A stretch of DNA of 64,000 nucleotides, taken from Trichosphaerium sp. ATCC 40318 (taxonomy: Eukaryota; Protista; Tubulinea). Where the stretch lies: contig JALMLS010000342.1 of the NCBI GenBank assembly GCA_038496445.1, forward strand, positions 248,877 through 312,876. The letters run 5' to 3'. The notes under the pieces were generated by a model that was not told where the DNA came from, made no database searches, and saw nothing but the letters and a program-made list of their open reading frames with translations. Position 1 is the stretch's first letter, and each line of letters begins with the position of its first letter. The translations under genes were made by a program, and so were the position numbers. Shown piece by piece: positions 20,216 through 54,549 of the stretch.

Positions 20216-23200
20216 ATGGCAGAAACTAGTCGCTTATGGCTCGCAGGAGGAGAAGACAGTGACTCAGATGAAGATGATTTCGCCTATGGAAGTTCTACAG
20301 ACGAAGGTGGCCTCTCTGATGACAGCGAAGAGAGTGACGATAACAATCAAACTTCTTCTTTTTTCGACGCTGGGTCGTCAGAAGAGGAAGACGATAAACG
20401 TTTCGTTAAATCTGAGCGAGCGAAGCAATTTGAAAGAACACAAGGTAAATTTGTTTACAAACGTTCTAAAATACTGTGAATGTAGTACTTACATGTTACA
20501 GAGTTTACTACAAGGATAACAGATGCAGCTGACAAGAACGAATGGATTGATGTTAGCACTGGTACACCGTTTTTGTTATTTTCACGCTATTCAAAATAGA
20601 AAACTTATGGCGCTTGCTGCGTTTTTTTTTTGAATAAAACTCCTTATTGTGTCGTTCTTACGCGTAGAAATTTGCTCCTATCGCTCCTTTAGCTTCCTTT
20701 TTGTTTCTAATACATGCTAGAATGGACACCTTTCTTGAGACAATACAAAATTACAACCAAGCTACAACTATTCGACAAATATGGTTATCCTAGATTCTTA
20801 GTGCGGTGTTTGGTCAAGTTAGCTGAAACCGTACGCAAATTGGGTAAAAACATGAAGGCTATCCAAAAAGTCATAAAAGGTACTGTAGCCACTTGTTACG
20901 CGCCGTGGTGCTTACTTGTTTCGCTAAATTAAGATGGTAATCAACGTAAATCGTACATTCGCTTCCAATCCCAGTTCACGAAGTGGATTAACAGCCAATC
21001 TGAGCTCAAAGAAAAGGTTGACAACTTTGAAGAAGGTCCTGATGATGAGGAATATGATGACGAAGCAGATGGCGATGGCGAAGGCAAACGTAAGAGCTAC
21101 TTGGCTTTTCCATATTTCTGCTCCTAGTCGCTCACTCAACTGTGTAGAGGATCTTAAATTAGAAACTGGCGGCGATGATGAAGATGGTGAAGACGAAGAA
21201 GATGAGGCTAAAGAAGAGACTTGGACAAAAGAAATCATTGAAGAAAAAATTGATTATTTGTTGAAACAAAGAGGTAAAAAAGTACGTTGTTGTGTATCAT
21301 ATCTCTATAAGGGTTTTTTTTATTTATACCAACATTAGTACGACAGAATCAAGAGAATTGCTCGATGGGAAAAAATGCTTGTGCTAGCCGAGAACAAGGT
21401 ATTTACTTACCACACGCGTAAAAATTAATCTAATTTTCGCTAGAAATTTGTTCCTGGACGCCTCCTTGAAGTTAAATTCTACTTAATTAACGCTATTTTG
21501 GACGTTAACCCAACTGTACTGTTACCTATGGCAACTGACCACTGGAAAAAGTGCGTTTGAATGTACGAAGTTAGACTAAACTTGTTGCGTAGGTGCTTTG
21601 TAGTGCTCACTGATATCCTCGAGCAAGTTATTGAAAATGATAAATTGGTTGCTATTAACGTAATCAATCCTGATGTAGTCGCTTCTCTTACCGAACAAGA
21701 TGACACTAAGTATTACGTTCAAGGAAATTTATCCCAGAAACTAAGACGACTTGGTGATGAGGTAAAGTGCACTTATCTTTTTTGTCTCTTTGATGCAGGC
21801 GCTTACAACTTTCATTAGTTGTTCAGAAGCCTTCGTAGTCTTGATGTGCACAAAGGCGAATACGTCGATAGGTTGAAGGACGAAGTGCCATTCTACCTTC
21901 TATTGACACGAGCTCAAAATTACTTTCAAGAAATGGGTAAATTCAAACTCGTTGCTGGTTTCGCCAGCGGACGTGCTGAATTGCTCTACTACCGCAAGAG
22001 TATGCCACAACCTTCTGTAACATACAGAGTACCAAAAGATGTTTCCGTACCAGAAGACGCTCTTGAAGAACTCAAACTTTGCGCCTCAACTGTATACAAG
22101 CACGGCGCTGACTCCTTGAAGAGAATGGTAGTTATACAGCAAGTCTACGCACTAGCTATTCGGGATTTGTATTTCGAAGCTAGAGATTTGATGTTAATGA
22201 CCCACCTTCAAGATACAATCGACAAAGCTGAACCTGTTGCCATGATTTTGTTTAATCGTGCCATTGCTCAACTCGGGCTTGGCGCTTTCAGACTTGGTCG
22301 TATCTACGAAGCACAGCAATGTTTGGCCGATCTTGTTGGAAGCAACAAAATCCGTGAGATGTTAGCTCAAGGTGTAAGCCGTTACGCTCAAGATAAAACC
22401 CAAGAGCAAGAAAAACAAGAAAGGAAAAGACAGATGCCTCACCACCTTCACATATCTACAGAACTTATTGAAGCTTCGTACCTTATCTCAGCTATGCTTT
22501 TAGAGATTCCAAACATGGCTAGACGCGACACAAGACCAAAGGTATGCAGCGCCCTTTTGTTTTTGTTTTCTCCTTTCCTTCATTGCTTTCGTGTCGTAAC
22601 AGTAATCTTTAGTTGCACAGCAAATCGTTTAGAAAGACTATGGATTTCCACAACCGTCAAGTATTCCGTGGGCCGCCAGAGAGCTCAAAAGAAGCTATTG
22701 TTGCCGCTGCCCAAGCAATGCAAGTTGGCGATTGGCAAACAGCGCAAAATCATGTTATCGGCTTGAGTGTTTGGCGTTATGTACCATCCTTTGAAGAGAA
22801 GATTGCACCTCTTCTTAAACAGTACGCTTGTTTTTCTTTCTTGCATTTTCATTTTCTGACGATGTGTTTTAGGCAAATCCGAGAGCAAACACTAAAAACG
22901 TACTTGTTCTCATACGGCAAATTCTATGAAGCTTTGAGTTTGGACCGTTTGATGGATATTTTCCAATTGACAAAGTACGTTATAAATTTTTTGTTTGCGA
23001 TTGTGACTAACATGGTTTTTTTTCTACAGGAGTCAAATACACAGTGTAGTCAGTAAGATGATGATCTCTGATGAATTGCCAGCTTCTTGGGATCAACCAA
23101 CTGGAACTATCATCTTTAACCGTGTTGAGCCAACGAAGTTGCAACAAATTACATTACAACTCGCTGACAAGGTAATCTTATTGATTTCCGTTTTAAATAA

Positions 23201-23467: not shown

Positions 23468-23742
23468 AACAAATAAGGTAGTCAAGTGGCGAATTTTGGA
23501 GTTCCCTTTTTGTAATAAAATAAATACGCTAACCTTACCCAAACCTGGTTTTTCTTTATTTTTTATTGGTGGGGAGGCGGCTGGTATCACATTTCTTGCT
23601 GTTGCGACCTGTGTTGAATTTTTTTTCTGATTGTTTATTAAATTCAACCCATAATCCATAAGGGTACTGTCAGTGCCCTCAAATGCGCTAAGCCATAGTG
23701 TAATTAATGACTACAGCTTGTTATGATTTGTTCTTGCACGTT

Positions 23743-25755
23743 ATGGCGTGTTTGCGCCCAGGAGCCTCGTGGCGTTCATTCAAGCTGTAAGAAGCGTATG
23801 ATAGTGAATAATTTGTACTAATCCAAACTTAAAGCTGTTACCAAGCGAAACCTCTTCGCTGATGGCGCCAGTGTCGCTCATAGCTTCTGGAACGAAATGT
23901 CAAACCGACGAGCATTCTTTAATTCCATTAGAAAGCAGTTAAACGTTGTACACGACGAAGATTGGTACAATGTTACAATTCGAGAGATTGGGCTGTACGT
24001 ACCAAGTCAACATTGTATCTTTTCGTTAATATGGGTTTAGCTTGGAGGATTTGGTCTTCTTAGGCGGTATTGTAGTAGTTGCTTGTAATTCATTATGACA
24101 ATACCAGGTATAAGGGATCACTATGCAACACTCTTAGAGAGACTTTCCCTGAACGTGTTTGGATTGAGTATAGGTTCAAGTACGTTGTTGATAACATCAA
24201 CACGTGATAGTATCAGTTATTCTCATTTCATATAAAGGAGCAAGAGGCGCAAAGATATTACAGCAAACTCACGGAAGAGATTTGATCAGGTGTGCTTAGT
24301 TGTCTTGTTAAATCGAACTCTAACATAGTTCAGATTGCAGCACGTATGGGTATTAAAACAAGAGATGATTGGGATAAAGTTACAGCAGATGATGTAAAAC
24401 GTGAAGGAGGAAACAGTACTTTGAACAAGTATGTATTAACATGTTCTTACATACGTGCTGATGCAACCAAGATATAGCAAATCTGTTAGTCATGCCGTAA
24501 ACTGTCTCTATGGTGGCGAGAGATCATTGTAAGTGCAACACTTTAAACAGCATGGTGCAGCATTTATAACTTAAAAAGGTATGGGCGCAAGCCTATTGGT
24601 TTTTGGCGTAACAAGTCAAATCAACGCGAACACTTTGAAGAGATAGCAATGAGTTTAGATGTTAAAACTATAGATGATTGGCGTAACCTAAAATATCGGG
24701 ATCTCATCCCGTTTGGAGCTAGAACAATACTATGGCTGTATGAAACTCACTTTTTTTTTTGTTCTAAGGGATGTTGTCTTTTAGGTACAATGATTCTATG
24801 AGAAAAGCATTGAATGTGATATATCCAGAATGGGAATGGAAGCTTAACAAAAAGCCAAGGTTGAAACATTCAAACGAAAGAAAAACTAACCTTGCCTTAG
24901 GCACAGGAGTGGTCATTGGCAAGATATTAGTAACATCACTTCTTACTTGCGAAGAGTAGCTTCTGATAATGATATCACTGAACCTAGTGGTTGGTATCGT
25001 ATATCTAAAGAGCAGCTTGCTGCTAGAGGAGGTGCTGGTGTTCAAACATATTATCCACGGATTCTACAAACAATGTATCCAAATGTAAAGTTCACTTGGG
25101 AGAAGTTTGGATTCAAAGTTCAAACAAAAAAAGCCAAGCAATGTGTTTTGCTCATGCAAGTTCAACATTTATTACCAAATACGGCTGTGTTAGAGGAACA
25201 ACAGATTGGTACAAGGGACAATGGTAGTGTCTTGACTATAGATGTATTCGTTCCCAAGTATAAAATGGCTTTGGAGTATCAAGGTAAACGCACCATGCTT
25301 GCAATTTGCTTACTCTTTTTATAGGAGAACATCACTACAACAATCCTGTTGTATTTAGTGTACCCTCAACTGTCTTTTCTTCCTTGGATGATGAGAAAGT
25401 GCGACTTTGTACAAAGATGGGTTCGTCTCTTAATAAACTTATGTTGTTGTTAAATATGCACTTTAGGGCTGTCGTTGATTCCTATTCCTTATTGGTGGTA
25501 CGTTTCTAAGTGACTATTGTGTGGACTATTCTTACTTCATATTGTAGGAACGGAGACTTGCCTTCGCTAGCTAGTACAATTATGTACTATTGTCCTAGTA
25601 TGAGTTTTGATATAGCCAATGGCGTTGCCCCACTCATTAATTCGCCGTTGGCACTTGAAGACGGTGCTGGTGCGTTGGTGATTTATGATTGTTGATACTG
25701 AAAAACCTACGTAGGCAAAGTAATGAATTGTGATGCTGTTCAGTTTTCAACATAG
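23743..25755 (+). CDS. Trp-rich ~70-aa repeat protein (about 4 units) with C-terminal PD-(D/E)XK (Vsr/DUF559/RAP-like) nuclease domain; paralog 1
   Basis: Leader MACLRPGASWRSFKL; units such as FWNEMSNRRAFFNSIRKQLNVVHDEDWY..GG..LLRRYKGSL..L..TFPE..W..RF; tail VLEEQQIG..LTIDVFVPKYKMALEYQGEHHY..DDEKVRLC..GLSLIPIPYWW. Confidence 0.8.
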
Positions 25756-26268
25756 AACAAGAATGAAGGAAATCGCGTTTAGTCTACTCGTGCTGCACGT
25801 CAGATTGAGTGACAATCACATGTGTATTGTTCACATGCAAAGTAAATTATTCAAACAAAGCCTAACTAAGGGCTACACAGGCGCAATCTAAGAAGTATGA
25901 ACAGTTGTTACATTAATTTGTAGCACAAAAAATGTGAAACTATTGTAAGATATGTACAAACAAATGTCGAATCTTTATAACTGGTGTTTATTCCTTATTT
26001 ATTTTAAATTCAAGTGATTTGATGAAGTACTTAAAAGTAGTTGCGTCAATGCAGTATCTTGCGCGAGGGCGTGTTTCCTATGACCTTGGCACTAGAGAGC
26101 ATAGACGTTCATTTTGAATAACTCTGTGGGAGGTCATGGCTGTAATCTACGTGGAGAGTGCCAGTATGCCGTATCACACCATGGTTATGATATCCGAGCA
26201 CGGCGAGGTTTTAGTAACTAGTTCAGCTTTGATTGAAGTCCATTTCGGGAGTCACAAATAGCCAACTT

Positions 26269-28482
26269 TTAGTTGGTGGTAGATAACACTTTTACACTAT
26301 TTGAACCCCATTTGGCTTCATAAGTGGTATGCCTAGCTTTTGTTAGTTTCTCTTTGTGCTAACTGGGATGTACTTTTAGACTGGGGACAAATTGCTATGA
26401 GGTCATCATTACAGGCTACCGCCAGCTCAATATCAGGTCTATGGAATCGAATGATGCCTGCTATTGCTTCCAAATCACCTGGACGCCACCAGTATGGAAT
26501 AGGAATAACAGTAACGCCTTAGAAACCAGTTGAGTACTTATCAATCTTAACAGTCTTTGGTACCTGCAATACGACAATGCTGCTGCTTCTCAGCATCACG
26601 ACGTTTTTGGGTGTCAGCAAAAAGTTCAAGGTAAATGTGGTCGTGGTAATGATGCTCGCCTACTCATATTTAGGGTAAAGAAAGAGATTGTGCAGCTTAC
26701 CTTGGTATTCAAAAGCAAGGTTATATTCTGGAACATAAATATCTACTGTAACTGTTTGTTGAGCAAATGTTGAGATGCCAATTGAATGTTCTTCCAATAC
26801 ATTACATGTGGGGAATATTGTTCGGATACATCTTTCAAGAGAACTAAAAAACTTTATAGGCCATTCACTAACTAAATAATAGTGTGAACAAAGTGCTTAC
26901 CTTTGATTTGTTGCTTTTCCTTTGCGTGTGAATTTATGCCAGTCCCACATAAACTTTGGCTCCATTGTTAATATGGCTCTTGGCCAGTAAGTGAGTATCC
27001 CAGCACCGCCCAATTTCACCAATTGGTACCCAGCAACTCTGTACCTACATATCAAATATATAAGAATTCATACAATGTAGAGATAGACTGTACCAATCTT
27101 TAGCAGTGTTGATACCCAACTTGCTAGCAACTGTTGTCAAGAACTTTTTTTGGTTTTCTTGCACTTCCCAGTATCCGCGTTTCCAACTGAAAAGGTCACT
27201 GTCCCAAGGATAGTCATAAAATACTTGCAAAGCACGCTGTAATGTCTTATACCTATTCACTTGAATTAAGTTTCCAATTTCTTTCCTTAAAAACCATCTC
27301 GGGCTCACCTTCGTAAAATACTTGGCATCAACTTACAAGCTACGCCAGCCTCCACAGCATACCAATCACTTAGCACTTTTACGCCAAAGCTTTGAGCTTG
27401 TACTTCAAACGCCATCTTGTCAGCGCTAATCCACATGCTATCAATAGAAGCCAGTAGCTCCCGTCGCTGTTTTTGCCTCTCGGTCTCGGATTCCTGCTCC
27501 ATATTCCGTGGCATTGGAGTATTCTGGAGTGCCTTAATAAAACGGTGACTTGGGTAGACATCCTCTAAAAAGAGTTCTTTGCTGGAGTAGTACATGCTAA
27601 AGACACTTAGCTAAATAGCTAATACAAAACACCGCACTATATACTGCTACCACCGTGCTCCAATATTTGGACTTGCGTTACTCTTTCCCAATCAGCGTAG
27701 TCCTTGATTTGTAAAGCGTCAGCAAGGCTGTCAGCAAAGTCTTTTCGACTGGACAATGAGCTCCAGTGATTACGGGGAGAATGCCTATACAATAGTTTGA
27801 AGGTATGCCATTGGAAAATACTTACTTGAATTGAACAGGATCCCATGCATAGTTGGGATAGAGATAAGCTAAACAATCAACCAGAGAGCCATTATTCTTG
27901 CTTTGCTTTATCATTAACATGTCAAATGTAAAACGTACTTACGAAAGTAAAGTTGCAGCTCCCAATTCTATTACTGCCTCCTGGTCTACAGTGTACCATT
28001 GCGCCATGTCTTTTATCTCCAATTGTTCTCCAATATAGTCAAAGGCTGCAATTTGATTCTCAATATCGCTCCAACAATTCTTGGGCACATTCCTTGAACG
28101 TTAGCCAATTGCAACAGTTGGTCTGGGTACAAGTGCGCACTTAAACTTCCAAGGCTGCCATTTGTACTTGCTATAAACCCATGCAAGACACGACGCAAGA
28201 GAATTGTTGAAATGTGTTCTAACGCAATTAGGAGGTACGCAAGTTTTGTAGGTTAGTACCGTAGCACAGCACGTGCACCGTCCGTCTTGATATCTGAGAA
28301 ATTTACTACGTACCAACCCTCCAGATCCTTTATTTGAAGGTCTTTTGCGATTCTATGTAACATTGGTTTACAAACGCCGTAGAGGTTGTCTGGCAGTTGC
28401 ATACTACTAGGTGTAAGCTACATTAGCGATTTTAAAGGGTTATGTTGTACTGATGCGACGATATAAGCAAAGATGCCCTCAT
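26269..28482 (-). CDS. Trp-rich repeat protein (about 5 units) with C-terminal PD-(D/E)XK nuclease domain; paralog 2
   Basis: Units e.g. RGYWEVQENQKKFLTTVASKLGINTAKDWY; tail VLEEHSIG..VTVDIYVPEYNLAFEYQGEHHY..RDAEKQQHCRIAGVTVIPIPYWW. Start uncertain. Confidence 0.8.
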
Positions 28483-28746
28483 AACTCTACAGTATATGCT
28501 TGGCGCTTGAAACTACTAGTAATATAGGTTTGCTGTGATTGTAAGCAAAAAAAAACCTGCACAATTGTGCCTTAACCCTAAACGGCCTTAGCCAGTGACA
28601 TATCACCCTCGCTAATTGCCATCATAGCCGGTTGGTAGGTGACATGTCACCCGATTTAGACACCTACGGTACGCTAGAACCACATTTTTGGTTTATTTGC
28701 TTAGTTATTTACATTTAAGTCCAACTTGATTTTTACATTTTTCTTT

Positions 28747-31700
28747 TTACATAGAAGAGGTTGTCGTCAACGCACCTGACGGAGGTTTAATGCGAAGAGT
28801 AGGTACGGCTCTTTTCGGTTCTCCATTGTGCCAAGTGTTATCTTTAGAATTAGAACTGTCTAGAGATGGAGTCGTGTTCTCTGAAATAGAAACGGATGAC
28901 CTTGCTGAGCTAGCAAAAAAAAGTCAAATTAACATCTTACTAGTACTGAACGTACGCGTGACCGGTAGGCACTTTTAATGTGCTCTGAGCAATTTTTTCT
29001 TGTGCGGTGTGGTCGTAACCTGCATTTAACCAACCAGCACTAGTGCTGGTTGACTCTATATTGGATATTTCCAGTACTGGCGCGGACGTATAACGTTGTG
29101 AAACCAATTCCTTTTCCTAACGATACATTGAGAGGAAGAACATTGTTTGAAGTAAATGACTGAAAAAAGAAAAAAAAAAAAAAGAACGCACCTGCAATTC
29201 AAACTGCTCATTTTCTTGAAGCTCTTCTTCCAACCTATTGAGTATAACCTTCAATTTGAGTATGCGATCTGGGAAGTCAGTTTGATATTTAAGCTCCATG
29301 TCTGGTAAAGACTGCTTTAAATGGCCGTGTACTCGGGCCATCTCTCTACCAAATATATGCGCAGATTGCTTGGCAGGCTCCTATTGCAAACACCATAAGC
29401 AATAAAGAAAAGATTACGCTTTCTCTTAATGTGGGACTTGCCTCATCAATTGCATCTGTTGGAATTGCGCATATACCAGCTATAAATGTCCTCATCTTTT
29501 CCTTATTCGATTCTATTACCACATTGACACCAGCCATGTATGGCTCTTTTTGTCCTACAATTGAGGTTAATAACAAAAACATTTGAAGTACTAAACAACA
29601 AACTGTATCCGTACCAAAGTTAACTAAGTTGCCAAGATTTTGGATGGTCTTGGCTATCAATGTTAAATCCCTAGCTATGTTTGCTGGTGGATGCTCCTCT
29701 ACCAGGCCAAATAACTTTGGTCCAAGCAAAGCAGGGCAGAAGAAACGCAAGAAAATAAATCCTGAAGGTGCTGTATACAACACTACATCGTCTTCTGGCC
29801 ACTTGGCTTTAACCTGAAACATTCCAATGAGAACCATAGGCAAATATTATGTTGATAATCATACCTCCTGTTTAATGTGCTCGAATATATTCCTAAACGC
29901 AGACGGACACCACTTTAGTGATGTAAAAACGCTGTCGCATATTTTTTGAACATAATATTTTAGTGTGCCCAAGTTTTTCTTTAATTCTTTTTCTTTGTTT
30001 TTAGCTTCAATACGATACGCATCCAGCTAGTAAAAAAAAACTGAATACACAGTTATTCAGCTATTTTTTGTGGTACCTCACAAGACTTTTTGCCAGCATT
30101 TGAAACCAATTCATCAATGATAGGTTTTAGAACCTTGTGTAAATACGGCATGCCTAACATTAATAAGTAAAACTTAATTGCGTGCACCATTATACCTGTT
30201 AGTTTCATGTACATATCTAGAGCTTTTGTTGCGACTGTGTTTGCTCTGAAAATAATGTTTGCATTTTCTAGTTTAGAAAGTAAGGTTTTATGTAATGAGT
30301 TGGCAAATGTCACGTACTTGTTTCTCTAATTTCCGCAGCAGCTATCTCCTTGATAAAATGAACGCCAGTTTTTCTAATTTCAAAGGCCTTTATCAGACAC
30401 TCAGCTACAGACTTTTCTTTCTTTTGAGAAACACCAGCTAACATCTTTGTTAACGCCATCTCTTCTCTTAAAAGCTCAAAAAACAATTCATCATAAGAAG
30501 TATCAGGCAATATGGTGATGCACTAAGTTATTAGGTCAGCATGATAAAGAATAAACATCATTCTTTATACCGCATAACGCCATGTTGCACGCATTTCTGG
30601 TGCTGTCCCGTCCCACTCAAGTTCTGGTGGTGATAAGCGCCACCATTTATCTTGATTTACAGGGTTCGATAAATCCTGCAGTGGAACGCAAAATTGACCA
30701 ACCGGCTCCTTGTCCCACACCTCAAATAAGATTGAATCGTCTGCAAGCTCAGGTGGAATTTGGCTACACAAACAATTAACTAGTGGATCAAATTGAATAG
30801 CAAATGGCTTTAGTAAAGGCGTACAAAGTGCATTCTGCTTTCTTCCATTTTGGGTTAGAACTCTTTTTGGTTGTCGGTGTCTTACTTTTGTATGTCTGGT
30901 CTCCCAGCTTACATAAAAAATAAGGTTCGGTAGCAGCGTTTTCACTTTGTGGTAGATCACGACCAGCGCGAACTAAATAGTAATAAGAACAAAGAAAAAA
31001 AGCTTTAAAATTAACACGTCAAAACGTACTCGAAAACGAAACTGTGTTGTTACTAGGTTGATATTTAAATGCGACGTTTACTTCTCCTCTAATGTCGCAA
31101 TGGAGAGGTACTAATTTTCGCCAATCCTCTTGCGTTTGGCCAGAGACTAAATTAGAAACTTTTATCAAAACCTACATGCAAGATTAATAGATCAAGAATA
31201 ATAATTATTCAAAAAAAAAAATTGTCTCCATACCCTGCCAATTGGAGGACTGCGCTTCCGTTTTTGCTCGCGCACAATGACGTACACTTCGCTAGTATCT
31301 AGAGACAGATCGCTAACAAAGAACTTTAGAGACTTATGGCATTGATAAAAAACAAATATAAATTCAACTTTGAGAGTAATGTCATTTTACGTACAAATCG
31401 TATTCTTGCAAAAAACAAGGATTATCAGTGCGCCAAAGTGTAGGAGTGCGCGCTTTCTGTACTCTATCAGCAAAGATGGTACAGTAGGTATCTTTGGGCT
31501 TATCCAAATTCCGAACTTCAGAAACTTGAAAAAAAAAAAGATAAGTACAAGGCTGTTTTGACATAAAATGATGTCTCTTTACCTCTAACATACAAACCAA
31601 CCTCCTTTCTGTACTTTCCTGGACCATATTTAAATTCTGCGGAAGTTTGTTGCTTTGAGTGTGTCAGTGAACAAAAAAATGGTAACGCAAATTTTTTTTG

Positions 31701-32273
31701 ATGGTTTAAACGCACGTTTATGGTTTGTTGTATCTGAAACATCCACTCACTTAGGTCAACCGAGTTGGCGACTTGAAAGTAGTATGTTGTTATTTTTTTC
31801 TCTTTGGCCTTGCTTCCAACAGGCGCTGTGTCGTCCTTTTGGAACAGTTTAAATTGGTAATAGTTTTTTTTCTTAGTTAAGGGTTCACAACCTTTATATT
31901 GAGCCAAATCAATTACAATTTTCGCGTCTTGGGCCTTGAAATAAAACATATAAGCCCCCCCATAGTTTAATTACAAAAATGGGTTTGAAAAAAAAAAAAC
32001 GGGTAAGCTTAAAATGGCCTTCACAGGTGCGCTAGCGTTAAGAAAAGCTCTCGGAAGTAATACCTGCTCATCAGAAAACACGTATAGCATGGCCTCGTGC
32101 AAGATCAGCCATTTCTTCTTCCACTGAACGTTGCGAGTTTTCAGCGATACATAACCTTGTTTTTTTGCGTTGGATAGAGAGATAGCGGACACAGCTAACA
32201 AGGGGTTGTCACCCCTAGCGCTTTTATTGCCCCTGCTACTTTTATTCCCTTTGCTCCGCTTTGGTACGTGCAT
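28747..32273 (-). CDS. Ras GTPase-activating protein with PH and two C2 domains
   Basis: PH (KQGYVSLKTRNVQWKKKWLIL..EWMFQI); C2 (DTYCTIFAD..ARTPTLWRTDNPCF; ILFEVWDK); RasGAP (IFRANTVATKALDMYMK, FIFLRFFCPALLGPKLF, LTLIAKTIQNLGN, KEPYM). Confidence 0.93.
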
Positions 32274-32582
32274 AGTGCGTTGGCGTTAATGTTAGAGCGT
32301 AGGGTCGCTATTTGGGTTTTTGCTTCCTTTTTTTTTTTTTTCCAATGAAACCCTCTGTCTACCAAGCGTTTTGGAGAGAGTTCATGTATTACCACCTGTT
32401 GAAAGTACGTCGGTTACAGACAAGTACTTAAGGGCAACGATAATTTTTGACGTTTTTTATTGAGGAATTTTGTTGCAGTTGACATATTGCGGACTAGAAT
32501 TGCTCCAAGTGCAAAACAACTACTAGGTACTCACCTCCTTGGCTTTTAGTCTTGCTTACTCCTTTACTAAGCTATAAAAAAA

Positions 32583-33018
32583 ATGGTATACCTCACAGTA
32601 ACAAAGTTTGACAAAGAGTTCATCCTTGTAGAAAGGCCAGATAAACAAGAGTACGCTCTATTACTATGAGGCGCAACCATTTTGCAAGAAATCGAAAGTT
32701 TACTGCGGTGGCCCTAAAAATATTTACGCTGCTAAAAGCCCTTGGTATATGCTAACACATCCACGCAAATTTAGAAAGTACAATGGTAGCTTGTGTGACC
32801 TATTTAACAAACTCGAAAACGAAGGTTTTAATCTAATCTCTTCTGGAGGTGCTGCTTGGGAACTAGTTTTCGTTTTCCACAAAGTACGGTTGTTTACTTC
32901 AAGTTTTGACTATTTACTCACTCAATATCTGCAGGACGGTCTTGCAGTCATCAAGGAAAAAGAAACTGAAGAACCTGCTCCAGTAGAGTCTAAAAAGAAA
33001 AAGAAGAGCAAGCACTAG
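32583..33018 (+). CDS. Small protein resembling the GFRP (GTP cyclohydrolase I feedback regulator)-like fold, with polybasic C-terminus
   Basis: Three exons: MVYLTVTKFDKEFILVERPDKQ / KYNGSLCDLFNKLENEGFNLISSGGAAWELVFVFHK / DGLAV..KKKKSKH. LxKLExxGFxxxSxxG..VxxxHK is similar to the GFRP C-terminus. Confidence 0.5.
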
Positions 33019-33327
33019 AGCTATTGTAGAGTGTGTACCGCCCAAAGTAACGTGATACCGGTTTATCGCGTTACAAAAAGAAAAAAAATAAAGCTAAATT
33101 ATCAAGGCGTTGCATTTGAACAACAATTTTTCCGTTTTATTTTTCAACTTTGACACTTTACGTAAAACAAACAGAATATGGCACCTGCTAGTAGCTGTTG
33201 TATCATTGTCTACACAATAACGTTCTTTTCAGAATAGAACAATTCGTCTAAATTCAGTAATCTGAATTTCAGTTTAAGCGAGGCACGCGACCTACTATAC
33301 TATAGTTCAGTATTTTAGCCAGACATT

Positions 33328-34400
33328 ATGAGTGAAGCAAAGAAGAAGCTTAAAATATTATGTGTACACGGTTTCATGCAAAATGGCGACATTTTTCGCA
33401 AAAAAAGTGGTTCCTTTAGGTATTATCGCAACCCCAACTGTGTTGTAATGTGTTTAGGTCAATGGTAAAGGCTACATGCGAATTTGGTACGGCTTAACTA
33501 TTTGCGTTTGAAACGTAGTTTTACCGCGTCGTGTCGCGTGTATGGCATTTACCATAGCGCGTGCAGGTGTTAGTAGCGTCCCAGGACTTGACACCCAACA
33601 CAAGCTACATGAATTTCACCAACTTATTTTTCAGTGAAGTTCTACCTCCACGTAAACTTATTGGTTACCACGTAGATTTTGTAACAGCGCCTCATAAAGT
33701 TGGAGTATCAGATGATGGTCAGGGTGCGTCTGGCGCAATTTGATTGCTGCTTCGGTTTTGTTACTCACCTTAATTTCCTTGCAGACGTTTTTGGATGGTG
33801 GACATCAAAGAACCCAGATGATTATTTGACTTGTAAGGACCTTGTTGGCGTTGAGGAATCAGTGCAATTAGTAACCACCTATTGTGCAAAAAATGCAAGT
33901 TATTATTTCCGCACCTCTTTTTTAGCCTTTTGTAGTCTTACTTTCTTGTAGGGCCCTTTTGATGGTAGTTGCATCACAATAGTATCTGACCTGATTTGTC
34001 GTGTTTAGGTATACTTGGATTTTCTCAAGGAGGTATTCTTGTGAGCATTCTCTGTGGAATGTCAGATCCTAGCCTGTCATTTAAATTTGCTTGTATTTTT
34101 TCATCGTTTCCTATGGCGAATCCAGATTGGGCAAAGTACTATGACTCACTGAAACCAATGCCATATTTCTTTGGTAGGGTTCAATGTATTTTTATACATT
34201 GAAGCTGACACTTTTATGAAGGTTATGGCACACGAGATGACATTGTTCCTACTGATTGGTCGAAGAAAGTAGTTGCACTACTTCCGAGCGAATCAACAAC
34301 TGTTTATGAGCATGATGGTGGGCACTACTTACCAACAAAAGCTACCGCTAAGAAAGCTTTACGAGCTTTCATGGTAGACCAGCTTGCAAAAAAAAAGTAA
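33328..34400 (+). CDS. FSH1/OVCA2-family serine hydrolase
   Basis: LKILCVHGFMQNG..FRKKSG, FVTAPH, GPFDGILGFSQG nucleophile motif, GTRDDIVP and HDGGHYLP. Confidence 0.93.
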
Positions 34401-34501
34401 AGAACAAAAACGGAGGCTGTTGCGTTTTTGGTACTAAGTATAATAACAAATAAACTAAGGCACTAATATAGTACAATACAAGGATTTTGTTTAGTTCTAA
34501 T

Positions 34502-37500
34502 TTACATCATCATTAAGTTAGGAGACATAATAGATCTCACGTGTTCGCTGCCAGCTGGTTGCCCAAGAGCTTTATTTGTGTATTAGTAAAGTATCGTAGT
34601 TAGTTTGTAAAGTACCTTGAGGTGCGCTATCAGTTGATATAAGCGGTGTCACACCATGCAAGTCATTTTGTGAAACTGACATTTTGACTTCGGGCTTGTA
34701 GTGATATATTGTGGCTGCAATAGTTTCAAGGTCTCCTATTAGCGTGTCAATCACTACATCATGATCAATATGTACCTTTCCACCAATACGGGATATTAAC
34801 TAGTGTAATGCCTAGAATACTATTAAGAAACGCCAACCTAGCTTTTACCCGTACCTGCTGCTTTACATGCTTGTCGCTTCTCAAAGTCACGAGCCTTATA
34901 TACACTCGATGGAATGACATAGTATTTTACTACGTCATCGTAATGATGTTCTCCTAATGGAATAGGTTAGTAAAACTAGTAGAGAGGTGCTAGGGTGTTA
35001 CCTTGATATTCAATAGCGAGGTTGTATTTTGGTACAAATACGTCAATTACAAGAGCTGATCCCGTGGAGTTGCAGGTGCCAATATTGCATTCTTCTTGTA
35101 CACGTTGGTCCGGAAACAGCCTATTTACTGAATCCTTTAAGCTTCTAGTTACTAGTTAGGTATGTTTTCAAACAGTTGTACTGTGTACCTTTGCTGTGAT
35201 TTTTTTGTTTGACAAACAAAATTTGTCCAGTCCCATTGTTTGGAGGGATAAAGTCGTTTCAGCGCATGCGGGAAATGTATGACAAATCCCCCAGCTCCAA
35301 GAGCTTGAAGTTGTTCTGATGAAACACGATACCTAATGTTGAGCAGTTAGAATATATGGTCTAGCCGGCTAGAAAACTATACCATTGGCTTGGGTTGCTG
35401 ATGCCAAGTTTGTGTTTAACCTTTTTCAAAAATGCAACTTGATTAGTCTGCTTGACCCAGTGCCCATAGGGTTGCCTAGAAGTGTTTCTGAAGGAAAAAT
35501 GAGCCAAGGAGCCCATACGAAGTAGGTGAGTTAAGTACTTGAAGTCCCAGTCGTAGTCAGGGTAGATAGCTGTAAGCACAGCTGGTAGGTTAGTACCATG
35601 CCTTAAAATGTTTTAGTATCAGTGGTAATATGGAAAAAAAAAGGGATACATACTTTTTGAAGATACTAGAGGCACCGTTTTCAATAAATGTTTTGTGACT
35701 GATCGTTCGCCAATCGTCCATAACGAGTATGCGAAGTTCTTGTCCCAAATCTTCAAATTTTGCTCTTTGATTTTTCATGTCATCCCAATAGTGTTGTGGT
35801 GCACTCCTAAAAGGCCTTATCAGTTACAATTTATATGTAAAATCGCTCCATACAAAAAGGAATAAGGCTTCCAATCAATATCTGGATACACGTCCTGAAG
35901 TAATCTTGACAAAGATCCTTGATACCCATACATATGATTAAGCATGCTATGTTTACAAAAAAAAAAAGTGAAAGGGGGGTACTGTTTTAGTGAGGTATGT
36001 CCGCCATTGTTTTGTACTTGTGACACTTGAACTGTATACCAATCTTTGAACAGTTTTACACCCAAACGTTCTCCGATAGATTCAATAGTAGATTTTGTGA
36101 GTCCTATCTTAGTGTATCTAATGATGTGGAGGCAAATTAGGATGCAGTGATGTATCCAGCAAATACAATAGAAAAGCAAGTTACATACACAAATTTCCAT
36201 CGTTTCCAATCAAAATCGGGATACACGTGGCTCAGGAAAGTGAATAAGCTGTTATCAAATCTAATCTTATCTTTAGAAAAAAACCCTGACACTTTCTGTA
36301 TATGTGCGACCTTGAAAGCATGCCGCCACCTCCAAGATCGTGGAATGTTCTCACATTCATGGTGTACCATCCTTCTAGATCCTTAATGCCAACTTTTTTA
36401 GCCATGAAGTTTATTTTCTCTCTTTTTTGCGCTATTGATTTGAGTGTACCCCATTCGGCTCCAAAACTATCTAGCTGTCAGTTTTAAAGCTAGTTACATG
36501 TATGTACCTGAGTCTATATGCGGCCCAATCGTAATATGGGTACACCGCCTCCAGGGATTGTGTTATACTCCTGTACCTTGACAACGTAAGCAAGTGGATA
36601 GCAAATTAAATTGTAACAAACTAACTTGTTTTTTATAAGGGAGATGCATCCTTCACTCAAATCAGTGAGTTGTACATCAAGCCAGTCATATTGTGTCATG
36701 ACTCTGCATTTTTGTGCGTCTACATCAAACTGTTGTCGCTGCTCTTCTAAAGTCCCCCTGTTAACTGATAATCTATTTAAAATGAAATGAGCTATTAATG
36801 TGCATAATTACAAAAAGGGATGCTCACTTTGTAGATAGTGACCAAGGATATTCAGGATATATACTTTGGAGGGCTGCCAAAAGAGAACCATTGTACAACC
36901 TACATTAAGTCAGGAGCCGGGGTGACATGTTTTTTTTTTTTTTTTTCCCTGCTGAACAAAAATACGAAAGTTATGTGTATACCCTACTATCGTTTTCCCA
37001 CGTGTTGTGGAAATAGATTGTATATCCACAATGTACCAATCCTCATAGGTATGAATGTTTAACTCTTCTCCTAGGATATTAAACGCGTCACGTTGATGTG
37101 ACAGTTTTGCCCAGTAACGCGCAGGTACTTGTCTAGTTACCACTTTTTAAGTTGGACGTGTGGCCAAAATGCTTTACCTGAATTTCCACACCTGCCATCT
37201 TTCGGAGGGTATTACGCTTGTTAGTGATAACGCTAGTGAGCCGTATCTAATATAACTGTCATTTGGTGTTTTTTTTTTAAATTAAGCAAAACATCTTGTT
37301 GTTGTTAAGAGCGTACTTGCGCAGTACACTATATCCGCCTGCACCTCTGACACGCTCTGATGTATGTTTATACCAATCATCGGTTGTCTTGATATTCAAA
37401 GTGGCTGCGACGCGTTCTAATACCTTTCTATAGCGTTTCCTCGCATTTGCAGCTTTTCTCGGCTTTGCTAGCATTTCGCATTATAAAACTAAACGGAAAG

Positions 37501-37769
37501 CGCCCTACTCACAAGTACTGCGCAACTTTTGTGCTAATTTGGAGGTCATTGCGATCGACCATTGCTCCAATAGTGCAAAATCAACATCTGTCAAAATGAA
37601 CTTAAGTTTGACACCTTTTTTTTTTTTCTTTTTTTTTTTGAAAGCTGGCTTTCCGCATTGCTCTTGCCTTCTTCGGATTTACAAGTTTATTGTACATGTT
37701 ATTTACGCAAGTATCTTGGTGATTTACACCATGTGTAGTCGTGCAACGGCTGAAACACAACCTTAACAT
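34502..37769 (-). CDS. Trp-rich repeat protein (about 7 units) with C-terminal PD-(D/E)XK nuclease domain; paralog 3
   Basis: Leader MLRLCFSRCTTT (inferred); units e.g. VPARYWAKLSHQRDAFNILGEELNIHTYEDWY and APQHYWDDMKNQRAKFEDLGQELRILVMDDW; tail VQEECNIG..LVIDVFVPKYNLAIEYQGEHHY..RDFEKRQACKAAGITLVNIPYWW. Confidence 0.8.
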
Positions 37770-37828
37770 AAAAATAAAAAAAAACGGAGCTTTACAAAGC
37801 GGGGCGTTGGTTGAGAATACTCGCTGGT

Positions 37829-39956
37829 TTAGTCCCGGAAGTAGAAGCCTTCGTCGTCTTCTAACTTTGGTCGCATCTCCCTTTGGCGAGGTTTTTCAAG
37901 TTCCATACCACGGTCTGCTTTTACCCTATCAAAGAATTCCTTTTCACGTTGGGCCATAGCGGTTTGATGTTTTTCATTCGTTCTCCTATTCTCAAGCGTA
38001 TCCTCTCTTGGGCTACTCAAAGGATCTTCAATTGTCACCCAATCAGATGCTTTTCCAGTTATAGCTCCCTCGTTGCCTGTGAAAGTGTGTTACTTACTCA
38101 ACTACTAAACCGTGTTGTGAGATTAAAAACAATTACGTACCAAACACTTCTTGATAATGTTCTGAATCCTTCCAGTCTCTAGAGCAAAATACGTTAACGA
38201 GGAAAAAAAAAAATTGGGTTGCATACGGTGAACTCTTCTTTGTTTCCACTTCACCAAACCTATCAATGTACATTTGCTTCTTATTGAATCTTTTGCATGC
38301 TGCCAGTACTATGTTCTTGAGTTTGGATGTTGCTTCCAGTCCTTTGGAGAGCATCTCATCGATAATAGCAAAGCCCTCATCAAAACTTCTACCTCGAACT
38401 AAAACCTCAATTACTCTGCTGTACACTTCTACAGTTGGGTCGACATTTCGCTATAAATTAGACATTAATGGGATGACACTTTAGGGTTACTTTTTTTTTT
38501 TTCAAAGATCAGCGCAAACCTTTTTCATATCCTCGAAGTACCAAAGTGTCAAGTCTTTCTTTTTGGATTTGGAGTAATGCTTGATCAAGATAAGGTAGAT
38601 ATCTGAAGTAGGCTTAATCCCTTTGTCCTCCATCTCTTGAAACTTTTTGTGAATGTATTCCAATCTACGAGAATTTATTGAATGTTTTATTGGATTGTGT
38701 TAATCTGGTCTTTTATTGGTGGTAACGTACTTGTTGCTCTTTACCAAACATTCTATTAGGTACTTGTAGGTGTCTAAATTTGCGTCTAAACCATAGTGTG
38801 GCAAGAGTGTAACCATTCGGCGAGCTAACTCATAATCACAAGTTACACTTGTACGTTTAATTATGCTATTTATATTAAAGGTAATAGGACGGATGTTTTG
38901 AGATTGCATAATCTAGCAAGTAGCCATAAGTTCAACTCCTTATTGGCAAACAAAAAAAAAAAACATATCATTTACATACCACTAAGAACTCTCGAGCAAG
39001 TTCAGGCTTTCCTGCAAGGCACATGACTTCAATTACGGCGCTATTGGAATAATGTGAACATACGGTTTCGGTGTTGTATAGTATTTACCTGTATGATAGT
39101 AAAGTAGGTTGTGTACCTAGCAGTCAGTTAATTCCGTTTCATTTTATATTTGAATTTTTAGGGGGCTACCAGATGCCTTCAATTCCTCCCAGATTGTAAG
39201 AGCGTCATCTAAGTTATTGCGTTTGGCGGTGGCCACCATCATAGCTGCGCATACGTCTATTTGATAGTTAGTAAAGAGCTTCGCAGCTAAGCAGTGATTG
39301 CTTTCCTTCTTTGTACTGTGTCGTTCCTTCTTGTCGCCGAGCATCATCAAAGGTTTCCAATACGTCCGGGTAATTGCGCTTGGTTAATAACAGTCAACAC
39401 AAAATAATAAAAAAAAAGAAAGTTGACACCGCAATGTGTCATGCCAAACAAAAAAAAAAAAAAGCACTCACTCTTGTAGAATTTTTTACAACGGCCGCCA
39501 AGAACTCTCCAATATGTTCAGGTGTGCATTTGGTCTCGTCATACCGCAGTTCGCTGTCTGCGAACATGGAAAACCAAAAAGTTTCTTGTGGACCGAAAAC
39601 ATCCACCTCAGGCTCTTTCCCGTGTATGGTCGCTGTACCGTCCGTGCAATACGCCATGTAGCCTGTACCTGTCATTATTAAAATTATTTTACTTTATAAC
39701 TCTATGTGAGCACATACCAGGCGTAGTTGAGTTCACTCGCAAGAAGTGGGAGCGTCCAAGGTTGTACACGCATCGAGAGCTTGTTTGGTGCGTAACACTT
39801 CGCACTGGCGTAGCTTTAATGTATTTAGTACGCACCGAAGCACCACGTATTATTCTGAGCAGCATAGCTGCCAGCTACAGAAATTTTTCGTGTTTGGAAC
39901 AATGTTGACATTGTGGAGTTTTTTTTTTTGGTTGTTTGCTCTTTTATTACCACCAT
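37829..39956 (-). CDS. Pentatricopeptide-repeat (PPR) protein, probably mitochondrial
   Basis: Arg/Ser-rich, acid-free leader MLLRIIRGASVRTKYIKATPVRSV (ATG at 39865 or 39956); tandem ~35-aa motifs such as TYKYLIECLVKSN..FQEMEDKGIKPT and VYSRVIEVLVRGRSFDEGFAIIDEMLSKGLEAT. Confidence 0.85.
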
Positions 39957-39996
39957 TTTAGTTGGTTGCTGAGGTCCCTACCCCTTCTCTTGCGTA

Positions 39997-41129
39997 ATGA
40001 AGGGCGTAGTGCGATTGTTTAAAGAGGGTAAGACAGGTGACAAGTTTCACAGTGTGAGTGTTAAACTGTAAATAAAACGGTCATATTAACATAGCTTTTA
40101 GGCACTCTCACAGGTACAAAATTAAATTCCACTGAACGATTGGTTTTTTTTCCTTCTTTCCGCGTTTTATTGGTACATCTAGGCAAACTACACCGTACAA
40201 TACTCTCCAGTGCTGTCCTTCGCGTACATAAATGCAGAGGCGCTCAAAAATGCTTTAGAGCACGCAAATGCGTACTCAGGCATGGTAGTAACAAGTTCGC
40301 GAGCTTTCACGGCATTGCGTAATTTATTTCCTGATGAGGCTACTTTACAACATTTGTGCAGCCCATGGCTTACTAAACCTCTGTTTGTAGTTGTGCGCAA
40401 CCACAGCTATTTTATTTTTTTGTATTGTTTTTTTTTAATCACGTGACTTCAGGGAAAATCAACACTATCCAAGGCTCCTGTAAAATTTAAAAATATTACT
40501 CAAGGCCCAGCGGGATCAATAGAGCTTTCAAAATTAATTGTTGCAAAAGTGAAATGCAAAGAAGAGGTACAAATAAACCTTTACACTCATGTAGAAACCG
40601 TTAAGTATATTGTTTTGTATGCAGGAAACTAATTATGTCAACAGTCTCTACCATTACTTTATCTATGCAGTAGTATACGTCGCAACGAACTACCAGATGC
40701 CCTTGCTTTAGAGGGGATTAAACTCGCAGAACTTGTTGTATACGAGACTGTAGGAATAGATATCAACTTGGAAGACCAAAGGTAAAGAGTAAAATTCTCA
40801 TTTTTTTTGTAATTTATTCTCGTTTGTTGCAATTTGACACTTTTGCTTATCCACATTAGTGACAAGCCTTGTTGGGTAGTTTTCTTTTCCCCGAGTGGTG
40901 TAAAGGCGGTACTAAGCAAGTATCCTCCATCATCCAAAATGTGGACTGACATTAAATTTGTGCGTTTCATCCTTTTTTTTTTGTTCTGTTTTTGCACTAG
41001 CATCTGATTAGATGTTAGGCCTCCATTGGTAAAACTACAAATGCTTCCTTGATTTCATATGGTATCATTGATTCCACTGTCGCAACATCGCCCACACCAA
41101 AAGGTCTGATAGAAGTAATTGATAAGTAA
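39997..41129 (+). CDS. UROS: Uroporphyrinogen-III synthase (HemD/UROS)
   Basis: PVLSFAY, YSGMVVTSSRA, LLYLCSSIRRNELPDAL..GIKLAELVVYET, WVVFFSPSGV, ASIGKTT and ATSPTPKGL. Confidence 0.9.
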
Positions 41130-41174
41130 AGTAACGCTTCTTTCTTGCGATATTCGGTTTAGTTTCCCTTGGAC

Positions 41175-42630
41175 TTATGCAATGGCTTTCTTAATGGCGA
41201 GTAGTAGATCCCTTGAGAAAAATGTCACCAGAATTAAGAACAGCCAAAAGAAAAGGGGCACCTTTGCTTTACTTTCTTGTTAAGTACTCGAAACTTAGAC
41301 CAATCCCAGTCTACAGTTGGATACATTGAACTAAGTACATACGGAAAGTATGCTAGCAAGCCGCTTCCACCTTTGTGGACAATCTGAGGGACAGAAATGC
41401 GGTACCTAAGTCTCCACGGTTAACATCAATAACCAAAGCAATAATCAGCAAAACAAAAAAAAAAAAAAAAAAAAAAAGAAAAGAGAAGTAGGTTACCAGT
41501 TGTAACAATGGTCTATATGTAACGTGGTTGTTAGCTGCTCCATAAATTTTATTCTGTTCGATTCATTGCGCCAATAGTTTCTTGAAGCGAATCTATTCAA
41601 CTCCCAAGTGTAATCTGGATACAATGTTGCAAGTAACTTTGCAAGTGAACTGCCATACCTTTAATATTGAGTTAGCAATGAGTTGAGGTGCTATCATAAG
41701 TAGTAGTACTTGTTGAGGATGGTTGCTCCACCGCACTTTGCAACGTCTACTTGTTGTACTGTATACCACCCAGCCATATCTTTTATCTTGAGCAACTTAC
41801 CAATGTGGTTCATTTTGCGTCTCTGGTTGGCTGGATCATCCCAATGAAACATGGGCGTTCTTCTACAACAAAGGGTCACAAAAAATTGTACGAATAAAGA
41901 AAAAAAAAAAAAGAAAAAAAAGAGGTGGTTGGTTACTTGAATCTGTGACTCTGCCACGAAAACTCTGGGAATACTTGCTTCAAACACAGCGTTATGCTAT
42001 CATTGTATCTAGTGAGGTCGGTTACAGAACGTCCGAATAGTCGGTTCAGCGCTACCTTGTCTTCAATAATTTGTACATAACGCGTTGCTCATCTACCGCC
42101 ATTACATCTTTGTAGTTATACAAGTACCAGTCTTGAAGCTTCTTAACACCTAATAAGCTACCAACTGCAAGTACATGCATTCGTTGAGTAACCAAATCGC
42201 CCCAGTAACTGGTAGGAGCGTTCCTACGAATAATAATGACTACAAAACGGGGACAACACCAAAAAAAAAAAAAAAAAATAAAACAAAGGGGGGGTTACCT
42301 GAAGCGGTGCAATCTCCATGTATGACTTGGGTACAAACATTGCAACGCACGTGGAAGAGAGTTACCAAACCTAGTTTCAATTTAAAAAAAAAGATTGTCA
42401 GCTTTTGCGTCGTTTACAAAGAACGCTTGCTATAGCGTATACACGCGTTTAGGTTCAAGCCTAGTTAATCTGTACCTGCTCAAAAGCGATGCAGCGCCTA
42501 ATTCCAGCAACTCTTCCTTCGTTATACTGTACCATTCATCTATGGTATGTACACAAAGTTTGCGCTCTGCTTGCCGAAAAAACCGCGTTTGGTTTGTTCT
42601 GAGCAGCCAGAACCCTCGGGGAACGTTCAT
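41175..42630 (-). CDS. Trp-rich repeat protein (4 units) lacking the nuclease domain; paralog 4
   Basis: MNVPRGFWLLRTNQTRFF..DEWY; NAPTSYWGD..QDWY; TPMFHWDDPANQRRKM..AGWY; RNYWRNESNRIKFM..NWYRIS; ends KKVKQRDLLLAIKKAIA* (41175). A 5' exon near 42803 is possible. Confidence 0.72.
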
Positions 42631-43383
42631 GGGCGTAGGTAGGAGTGACAGATTGACATAGTAATTTTTTTTTTTTTTGGTTTATTTTGAGATAAAGCGA
42701 GACCAAACTTCAAATTTTTTTTGTTTTTGGGTGAAAAAAGGACAAAACACCTCCTCGTCCTGTATTTTGATTTGTCCGCTCTATTGGCGAGCCTCACGCG
42801 CATAACGGAACAATGAGCAGTCGTGTACGTTATTACACCACAAATAAACCGAATTTTTTTTTGGCCCAAAACCACCGTAAAGCGGCCAGAGTAGCCACGT
42901 TTTAACGCCACGATTGTTTGTTGTTATCAGGACGCAGTTTTCAACAACATAGTTGCTTGTTTTGCGCTCGTACCCTGATATCAGGTAACAAGACGTGTTT
43001 GATACTACTGAGTATGTAATATCGAAAAATGGACAGAACTTTTTTTAATTAAACAGTTGCGCCACTTGCTGAGCTGTAATAGACCAAATAGAGAAAAAAA
43101 TTACTACGCCCTAACTCCGTGTATCTGTGGTAGTGCTGGGCGTGTCTATACGGTTGTTTTTTTTTTCTTGTTGTTGTTGCTTGCAAAAAAAAAAAAAATT
43201 GAACCTTGTATTCGCATTGCGCTGTTGCCTAGGGTTATTTGACATTCTTCTTTATTGCACCCTTTTGGTTTTGTTATTTCACCAAATCATTTTTCTTTTT
43301 CAAAACCTCACATTAACCACAAACTAAAAACCGTTATCTTATAAAATTTTAACGTACGTGGTACGTACTAAATTCTATTATAG

Positions 43384-48168: not shown

Positions 48169-48463
48169 GTTATTCTTTGTTGTGTATAAAATGTTTTTTG
48201 TTGTACAAAAGTAAGTTGTAGCATGACTCAATAAAGATAACATTTATAAGTTTTGGTGTTACAGTGGAAAGTGTGCTGCCAATGTTGACAATCCAAATTT
48301 GGTTTTGGTAAAGATGTTATACAGTAAAAGTAACTTTAATCTAAAATACAATTATAAGTATGCTAAAAGCAACAAAATGAACGTTATTGTAAACTGTTTC
48401 ACATTAGTTAGTGATACATAATAACTTAAAGAAAAAGCAAGGCTAGTAAAATATTGGACTCAA

Positions 48464-48614
48464 AACCCTAATACATATTAACCTAACCCTAATTCTACTT
48501 AGGGTTGTAACCCTATATCTAGCCCTAGCCAACATAGTGTAATCATTAGGGTTGTAAACCTAGCCCTAACCCTAACCCTAACATAGAATCTGATATTAAG
48601 CCCTAATCCTAATC
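48464..48614 (+). repeat. Degenerate telomere-like (CCCTAA) tract
   Basis: aaccctaa, acctaaccctaa, agccctagcc, gccctaaccctaaccctaac and ccctaatcctaatc, interspersed with two ttagggttgtaa. Confidence 0.75.
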
Positions 48615-54482: not shown

Positions 54483-54549
54483 CTACAAAAAAATCAGAAC
54501 CAAAAAAAAAAAATAAAGAAAAAAAAAGAAAAAAAGAGGTGGTTGGTAC

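Follow-up and report, generated by a model that had tools for sequence, protein, structure and literature searches.

Tandem 75-residue repeats joined to a Vsr-like nuclease domain in a gene cluster of Trichosphaerium: candidate repeat-guided, probably mitochondrial endonucleases

A 64,000-nucleotide stretch of the genome of Trichosphaerium sp. ATCC 40318 (contig JALMLS010000342.1, positions 248,877 to 312,876; hereafter the window, with positions counted from its first letter) contains four paralogous genes composed of tandem repeat units, and three of them end in a nuclease domain of the Vsr type. The repeat is homologous to the bacterial DUF4046 proteins. It is likely, with a probability of roughly 0.55, that these genes encode repeat-guided, probably mitochondrial endonucleases acting on DNA. 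In this reading, nuclear, intron-containing genes would encode modular endonucleases of three parts. A short basic leader probably directs the protein into the mitochondrion. It would be followed by 4 to 7 helical units of the DUF4046 type, each of 75 residues and four to five short helices, and the basic surface of this array would select a nucleic-acid site. The C-terminal Vsr/EDxHD-type PD-(D/E)XK domain, which carries the full family-invariant set of D, E, H, D and K, presumably catalytic, would nick or cut at or near the selected site. Mitochondrial DNA repair, recombination or processing would be the most likely role. Paralog 4 and a truncated duplicate lack the nuclease and may be binders only or decaying copies.

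Hidden Markov models (HMMs) of the repeat unit and of the nuclease tail were built from database homologs, none of them from the window, and all six frames were searched. The unit HMM matched four genes and one further place only, with E-values of 1e-9 to 1e-26 per unit. The four genes lie where a sequence-only reading of the same DNA had put them; the further place is a truncated fifth copy at 54483-55211, which that reading had overlooked. On spliced models, paralogs 1, 2, 3 and 4 have 4, 5, 7 and 4 units, the same numbers as had been counted by eye. The Trp-rich tandem repeat described there also stands, with the correction that its period is 75 residues and not about 70. The tail HMM gave 102-104 bits in paralogs 1, 2 and 3, the only matches in the window, so the earlier assignment of a nuclease tail to three genes holds. 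It gave no match in paralog 4, including the region 40000-41300. After its fourth unit, paralog 4 has about 20 residues matching the first helix of the tail region only, and then a stop codon; there is no nuclease domain. Gene models were made with a splice-aware dynamic programme that allowed GT-AG introns only, of 30-260 nucleotides, and all HMM-positive exons of each gene join into one open frame. On these models the four genes look intact, with approximate exon borders and modelled start codons. Introns are of the GT-AG type and 40-70 nucleotides long, and the GC content of the window is ~0.39. Identity among the four paralogs is 30-38% in the arrays and 37-51% in the tails; they are old and strongly diverged.

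The unit consensus that had been written down from the window alone is matched by that of 124 units taken from other organisms. In Pfam, neither whole homologs nor the 124 single units showed a consistent family match. CH, GIDA_C_1st, EcoEI_R_C and DUF2063 were considered as the identity of the unit and rejected, as their matches were scattered, sub-threshold and inconsistent. PPR, TPR and related Pfam repeats were not matched in the arrays, and the period of 75 residues differs from units of 34-40 residues, which bears out the view that the unit is unlike PPR, OPR and TALE repeats. The Pfam model of DUF4046 (PF13255) matched one of the 124 single units, at E 0.074, and none of the whole homologs. 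A tblastn search of an array against phages gave no match.

The relationship to DUF4046 was seen at the level of profiles. Searches of the ESM Atlas pointed to DUF4046; weak rows for PF18780, the "homing endonuclease associated repeat" (TM-score 0.28-0.35), also appeared there and were not used as an identification. A plasmid protein of Alicyclobacillus, matched by tblastn, passes the Pfam threshold for DUF4046, and its 40 relatives all carry PF13255. The alignment of 23 Pfam-positive proteins indicates that DUF4046 proteins themselves consist of tandem units of ~75 residues, from P..YW to YPG.FKPWEF. Tandem units of this length, with a P..[FY]W start and a YP..W end, are common to the DUF4046 proteins and the eukaryotic family. 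A single eukaryotic unit was aligned to the DUF4046 alignment by hhalign with a probability of 96% (E 4.8e-9), and three eukaryotic units were aligned to the 23 proteins with 98.9% (E 2.3e-17) over 193 columns and in register. The unit HMM matches all 41 of 41 DUF4046 proteins. In the reverse direction, an HMM from the DUF4046 alignment scores up to 154 bits in the family, where it matches 70 of 175 proteins, and 32-36 bits in paralogs 2, 3 and 4 of the window. Because of the hhalign results and these reciprocal HMM matches, the eukaryotic unit is a distant branch of DUF4046, and the remote link proposed in the sequence-only reading is upheld. The DUF4046 proteins of Bacillota share with the family the tandem, in-register ~75-residue unit from P-x-x-[FY]-W to YP(G/E)..W. 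They differ in having ~3 units and no nuclease, and the Pfam model misses the eukaryotic branch. The PF13255 model thus seems too narrow for its own superfamily. Within a limited literature search, no paper mentioning DUF4046 or PF13255 was found.

An AlphaFold2 model of two units with the tail has a predicted local distance difference test score (pLDDT) of 83. Each unit is modelled as a longer helix and, after it, three or four short helices. All PDB matches of this model fall on the nuclease part, and the repeat part was matched by no solved structure. The arrays of the family are basic, with a median isoelectric point (pI) of 9.1 and 84% of them above 8; in three of the four window arrays the pI is 9.6-9.9. 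The lack of a structural match, together with the uncharacterised function of DUF4046 and the existence of nuclease-less proteins (the bacterial DUF4046 members and paralog 4), would suit a protein of another kind. Here the array would be a scaffold for protein-protein contacts and the tail a structural relic or a binder of something else, so that these would not be nucleic-acid enzymes. This is very improbable, considering the basic arrays, the fusions to DNA ligase described below, and the five invariant residues on the catalytic motif positions of Vsr/EDxHD enzymes in 70-80 distant homologs, which argue for retained chemistry.

These residues were identified in an alignment of 70 tails, in which E, G, H, D, K, P, W and W are invariant and an upstream D is nearly so. 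In this numbering the invariant residues include E61, G64, H67, D85 and K88, and at least 90% of the tails have D50. In paralogs 1-3 the motifs EE..IG, IDVFVP, EYQGEHHY, D.EK and IPYWW coincide with columns that do not vary among 70-80 homologs. The presumed catalytic residues are intact, as had been read from the DNA. In a profile alignment, which is not a residue-by-residue placement onto the structure 3r3p, the invariant residues align with a phage VSR endonuclease. The AlphaFold2 model of the tail shows an alpha-beta-beta-beta-alpha-beta core with a mean pLDDT of 89. The top PDB matches by Foldseek, with probabilities of 0.97-0.99, were chains of the Toxoplasma gondii mitoribosome, in first place, Vsr and I-Bth0305I. 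The top matches in the AlphaFold Database (AFDB) and Swiss-Prot were uncharacterized bacterial proteins, two plant RAP-domain proteins and Vsr-type nicking enzymes. Comparison by VIA-align gave Z 9.8 for the homing endonuclease I-Bth0305I (3r3p), 9.5 for NGO0050 (3hrl), 9.3 for Vsr (1cw0), 9.2 for the T. gondii mitoribosome chain 9g6k_Li, 9.0 for the FAST-RAP module of FASTKD4 and 8.8 for the Polytomella ATP-synthase chain 6rd4_2. The tail thus models as a Vsr/EDxHD-type PD-(D/E)XK fold, and both the fold class named in the sequence-only reading (Vsr/DUF559/RAP-like) and the structure check proposed with it came out in its favor.

By sequence, the affinities of the tail are narrower. The Pfam RAP model (PF08373) matched none of 80 family members at E<=1, and the DUF559 model (PF04480) likewise none of 80, so the likeness to DUF559 proteins is in fold only. 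The automatic RAP names that some relatives bear stem from sources other than this RAP model. DUF2726 matches 28 of 80 tails, weakly. Searches of PDB by sequence, with single proteins and with the tail profile, gave no match. A survey of PD-(D/E)XK proteins in 2012 listed the Vsr/DUF559/DUF2726 group (group 58) as prokaryotic (PMC3424549). The family resembles this group in the fold matches to Vsr, NGO0050 and AFDB DUF559 proteins and in the weak DUF2726 matches; it differs in being a large branch in eukaryotes, with the nuclease fused to repeat arrays.

A sequence relationship to phage enzymes was found. A tblastn search against phages recovered an Enterococcus phage protein annotated as "group I intron-associated VSR homing endonuclease", located between the two halves of a terminase gene. 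The family tail profile aligns with it over the catalytic core at 98.2% by hhalign (E 3.7e-14), which indicates that the tail is homologous to this intron-borne homing endonuclease. The EDxHD/VSR homing endonucleases, with I-Bth0305I as the structural example (PMC3239194), share the Vsr-like catalytic domain, the conserved acidic and His residues, and the plan of an N-terminal modular binding region with a C-terminal nuclease. Differences are also clear. Their genes are carried by phage and bacterial group I introns or inteins, whereas those studied here are nuclear and contain spliceosomal introns. Their binding region consists of NUMOD/helix-turn-helix, zinc-ribbon or CapR modules, in place of 4-7 (up to 25) DUF4046-type units, and presequence-like leaders are seen in the eukaryotic family. 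No Pfam module of the NUMOD/helix-turn-helix or zinc-ribbon kinds was found in the family arrays.

The tail motif was found in >331 confirmed stretches in bacteria and archaea and >313 in viruses, both lower bounds, and 80 tail-bearing loci of each kind, prokaryotic and viral, were examined. Trp-rich units accompany the tail motif in none of the 80 prokaryotic loci and in one of the 80 viral loci. In prokaryotes and viruses the tail occurs together with DUF4379 zinc ribbons, CapR, DUF723 and NUMOD1, modules of the kinds that homing endonucleases ordinarily use as DNA-binding beads (PMC3239194). In three bacterial tail-bearing proteins the N-termini are unrelated to the repeat unit. The best prokaryotic match (E 1e-34) is in a Poseidoniaceae archaeon (L002:2837-4339), where five DUF4379 treble-clef zinc fingers precede the tail. 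In a quick tree, based on few columns and to be read with caution, 46 of the 48 eukaryotic tails fall together, and the three tails of the window stand next to Trichosphaerium proteins; the archaeal tail of L002 groups with the eukaryotic tails there.

Two further features of the family bear on where and on what these proteins act. The first is the N-terminus. In the 80 family members with a leader of at least 15 residues, the first 20 residues were compared with the rest of the protein. D and E together make up 4.1% of the leaders against 12.8% of the rest, R and K make up 18.6%, and 37 of the 80 leaders have no acidic residue in the first 20 positions. An acid-poor, basic composition is typical of mitochondrial presequences, and the N-termini of the family look like them. 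On the predicted starts, paralogs 1-3 begin with short basic stretches free of acidic residues.

The second feature is the fusion to a ligase. P0147 and P0138, two family members from other organisms, contain after the nuclease tail a region above the Pfam threshold for DNA_ligase_A_M. The NCBIfam profile PRK09125 "DNA ligase" is matched by P0147 (E 1e-42) and P0138 (E 2e-39) over nearly its whole length, and in part by P0032 (E 6e-22). In PDB, the P0147 extension comes closest to small ATP-dependent DNA ligases (E 5e-24), and a KxDGxR motif is present in both P0147 and P0032. P0089 and P0011 carry the same C-terminal extension as P0147. Judged from these matches, the ligase in P0147 and P0138 is essentially complete and of the ATP-dependent Lig E type. 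Because a Vsr-type nuclease here precedes an enzyme that seals nicks in DNA, DNA is the probable substrate, at least in the ligase-fusion branch. In the quick tree P0147 and P0138 are neighbors and branch close to the base of the eukaryotic group.

The fold of the tail and the leaders would also fit organellar RNA factors of the RAP/FASTK/OPR kind, in which the array binds mitochondrial transcripts or rRNA pieces and the tail processes or merely holds RNA, as in FASTKD4 and the RAP proteins of the T. gondii mitoribosome. Foldseek ranked mitoribosome chains first in PDB, VIA-align gave Z 9.0 to the FASTKD4 module, some close relatives are named "RAP domain-containing protein" automatically in UniProt and the Atlas, and a weak PPR-like gene adjoins paralog 3. 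Helical repeats followed by a C-terminal nuclease-like domain, behind a presequence-like leader, correspond to the RAP plan (PMC8190603). Compared with RAP organellar proteins (FASTKD4, 9gek; T. gondii RAP/HPR, 9g6k/9i05; Chlamydomonas OPR-RAP), the family shares helical repeats followed by a Vsr-like domain, a tail fold at Z 9.0-9.2 and a probable organellar targeting. It departs from them in matching no Pfam RAP model, and in its units of 75 residues instead of 34-40, which are unrelated to PPR, HPR and OPR. The homology of the tail in sequence is to DNA-cutting homing endonucleases, and Lig E-type ligase fusions occur within the same family. An RNA factor is possible and of the alternatives the one to be taken most seriously, while still clearly less likely than a DNA endonuclease. 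What keeps the RNA alternative in contention is that RAP modules match the tail in structure as closely as Vsr does and have the organellar helical-repeat plan in common with the family.

A different alternative keeps DNA as the substrate and moves the proteins out of the organelle. They could be homing-endonuclease-like genes, domesticated or still mobile, that may have been exchanged with giant viruses, or a fast-evolving, restriction-like defence of the amoeba against foreign DNA. The nearest characterised relatives are indeed mobile-intron endonucleases, and the paralogs are clustered, strongly diverged (at the array identities given above) and in one case partly duplicated. The ESM Atlas clusters of relatives list Nucleocytoviricota, together with Tubulinea, Discosea and Planctomycetota. 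One IMG/VR contig of 6.9 kb contains 4 Trp-rich units and a tail without introns (L088:65-1273), the only such case among the 80 viral contigs; the contig may hold a copy from a giant virus, or it may be host DNA that was misbinned. The genes of the window are not encoded in a self-splicing intron, an intein or another mobile context; they are nuclear, contain many GT-AG introns of 40-70 nucleotides and have ordinary neighbors such as RasGAP and PCI genes. The presequence-like leaders of the family also speak against such a role. The grouping of most eukaryotic tails, with those of the window beside Trichosphaerium, fits vertical descent and lineage expansion. Selfish or defensive nucleases are, on this evidence, unlikely.

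For repeat-guided endonucleases in the mitochondrion, support for sequence-specific binding and cutting comes indirectly, from the homology to modular homing endonucleases, the basic arrays and the ligase fusions, and these point to DNA more than to a FASTK-like role on RNA. Several points weigh on the other side. As no solved structure matched the repeat part, the mode of binding cannot be inferred; the function of DUF4046 is uncharacterised, and its bacterial members have no nuclease. RAP modules, which are structurally equidistant from the tail, act on RNA or in ribosomes. Organelle targeting is judged from composition, and the leaders of the window genes are short and placed on modelled start exons, with paralog 4 having no leader. 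Exon borders and start codons are those of predicted gene models, and a look-up of RNA-seq runs for 23600-28600 listed none. A limited literature search yielded no experimental work on any family member. A bolder version of the same idea, in which each unit reads a fixed stretch of bases through hypervariable positions and the protein is a natural programmable machine that cuts, or cuts and reseals, mitochondrial DNA (a nickase or nuclease, in some members with a Lig E-type ligase), is rather doubtful.

The family is large. An exhaustive HMMER search with 129 residues of paralog 1 (the last unit and half of the tail) found relatives in 1,458 clusters at 50% identity with E<=1e-3, and in 412 clusters with E<=1e-10. 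The nearest matches are transcripts of the amoebozoan Trichosphaerium, with 42-48% identity, and another member comes from Heterolobosea sp. BB2. In 162 retrieved proteins there are 945 units with a period mode of 75 residues, and the number of units per protein has a median of 6 and a maximum of 25. The same nuclease tail terminates most of the retrieved proteins. Almost all relatives are nameless, and a few are automatically named "RAP domain-containing protein (Fragment)". A word-indexed protein search with family alignments gave few relatives, all of them unnamed, and no Pfam labels. The family is thus already in public protein data, and the claim in the sequence-only reading that it is new cannot be maintained: it is populous there, some members bear a RAP name, and the unit falls within a catalogued, uncharacterised Pfam DUF. 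No publication on this combination of repeat and nuclease was found within a limited literature search.

The principle of a modular binding array with a Vsr-like nuclease is already known from the phage EDxHD homing endonucleases, and from organellar RNA factors in its RAP variant. The novelty lies in the DUF4046-type binding module of 75 residues, in the large scale on which eukaryotes have it and in the fusions to ligase. TALE nucleases (engineered TALENs) share the concept of a tandem repeat array for targeting plus a nuclease. They show no homology to the family, their unit has 34 residues instead of 75, the fusion is natural in the family, and a repeat-to-base code is known for none of its units. 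If the proposed function is correct, the repeat would join PPR, PUF, TALE, OPR and HPR as another class of modular repeat for nucleic-acid recognition, one that in nature is coupled to a Vsr-type nuclease, apparently active, and sometimes also to a DNA ligase. DUF4046 would gain its first functional context, and the Vsr/DUF559/EDxHD nuclease group would reach into eukaryotes with a large family. Amoebae and other protists would then seem to maintain their organelle genomes in part by means that are so far unexplored, and a decipherable rule from repeat to sequence would be directly relevant to genome engineering.

The gene models, from HMM matches and splicing, are as follows. Paralog 1 is on the plus strand at 23707-25695. 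It starts at ~23707 with a short basic leader, and the ATG at 23743 is a possible alternative. Its four units are at ~23872-24179, 24300-24528, 24561-24859 and 24901-25108; the nuclease tail at 25124-25509 is divided among three exons, and a C-terminal extension continues to 25695. The other three paralogs are on the minus strand. Paralog 2 is at 26333-28482, with its ATG at 28482 and, after it, a first intron of 44 nucleotides (28450-28407). Five units are found at 28363-28141, 28092-27826, 27784-27540, ~27450-27186 (degenerate) and 27182-26927, and the tail is at 26839-26420; an end of the gene at 26269 would need one additional intron.

Paralog 3 is at ~34575-37474, and further upstream exons are possible up to ~37769. 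Its first four units are at 37465-37180, 37131-36836, 36757-36513 and 36450-36191, and the remaining three at 36095-35856, 35802-35532 and 35477-35218. The tail is at 35146-34771, and an intron of 40 nucleotides (34775-34736) precedes the C-terminal extension. Paralog 4 is at 41237-42630, with units at 42624-42301, 42219-41936, 41858-41586 and 41585-41288. Single window exons gave no match in Pfam because the tail is divided among three exons, and Rfam gave no match anywhere in the window.

The truncated fifth copy (54483-55211, minus strand) corresponds to units 1-2 of paralog 4 with 97% identity. A 12.55-kb direct duplication repeats 42024-51437 as 54640-63973 with 90-100% identity, and its left border falls within paralog 4; the truncated copy appears to have arisen through this duplication. 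Near-perfect long inverted repeats overlie it, for example 53336-54535 against 59264-60463, with arms between ~46715 and ~63500. Behind the duplication and inverted repeats there may be a true segmental duplication or palindrome; an artefact of the assembly is the other possibility.

The neighbors of the paralogs at 29349-32273 (minus), 32749-33015 (plus) and 22613-23053 (plus) are ordinary eukaryotic genes, including RasGAP (E 3e-12). A PH domain, a GFRP-like piece and a PCI/SAC3-like piece are also hinted at among them, in each case weakly and below threshold. The PPR-like open frame lies at 38136-38426 (minus), between paralogs 3 and 4, and is weak (E 0.0045, under the Pfam cut-off). Long T/A runs, which appear as poly-Phe or poly-Lys in translation, occur in or beside the introns of paralogs 3 and 4 (41870-41990, 42240-42300 and 37600-37680).

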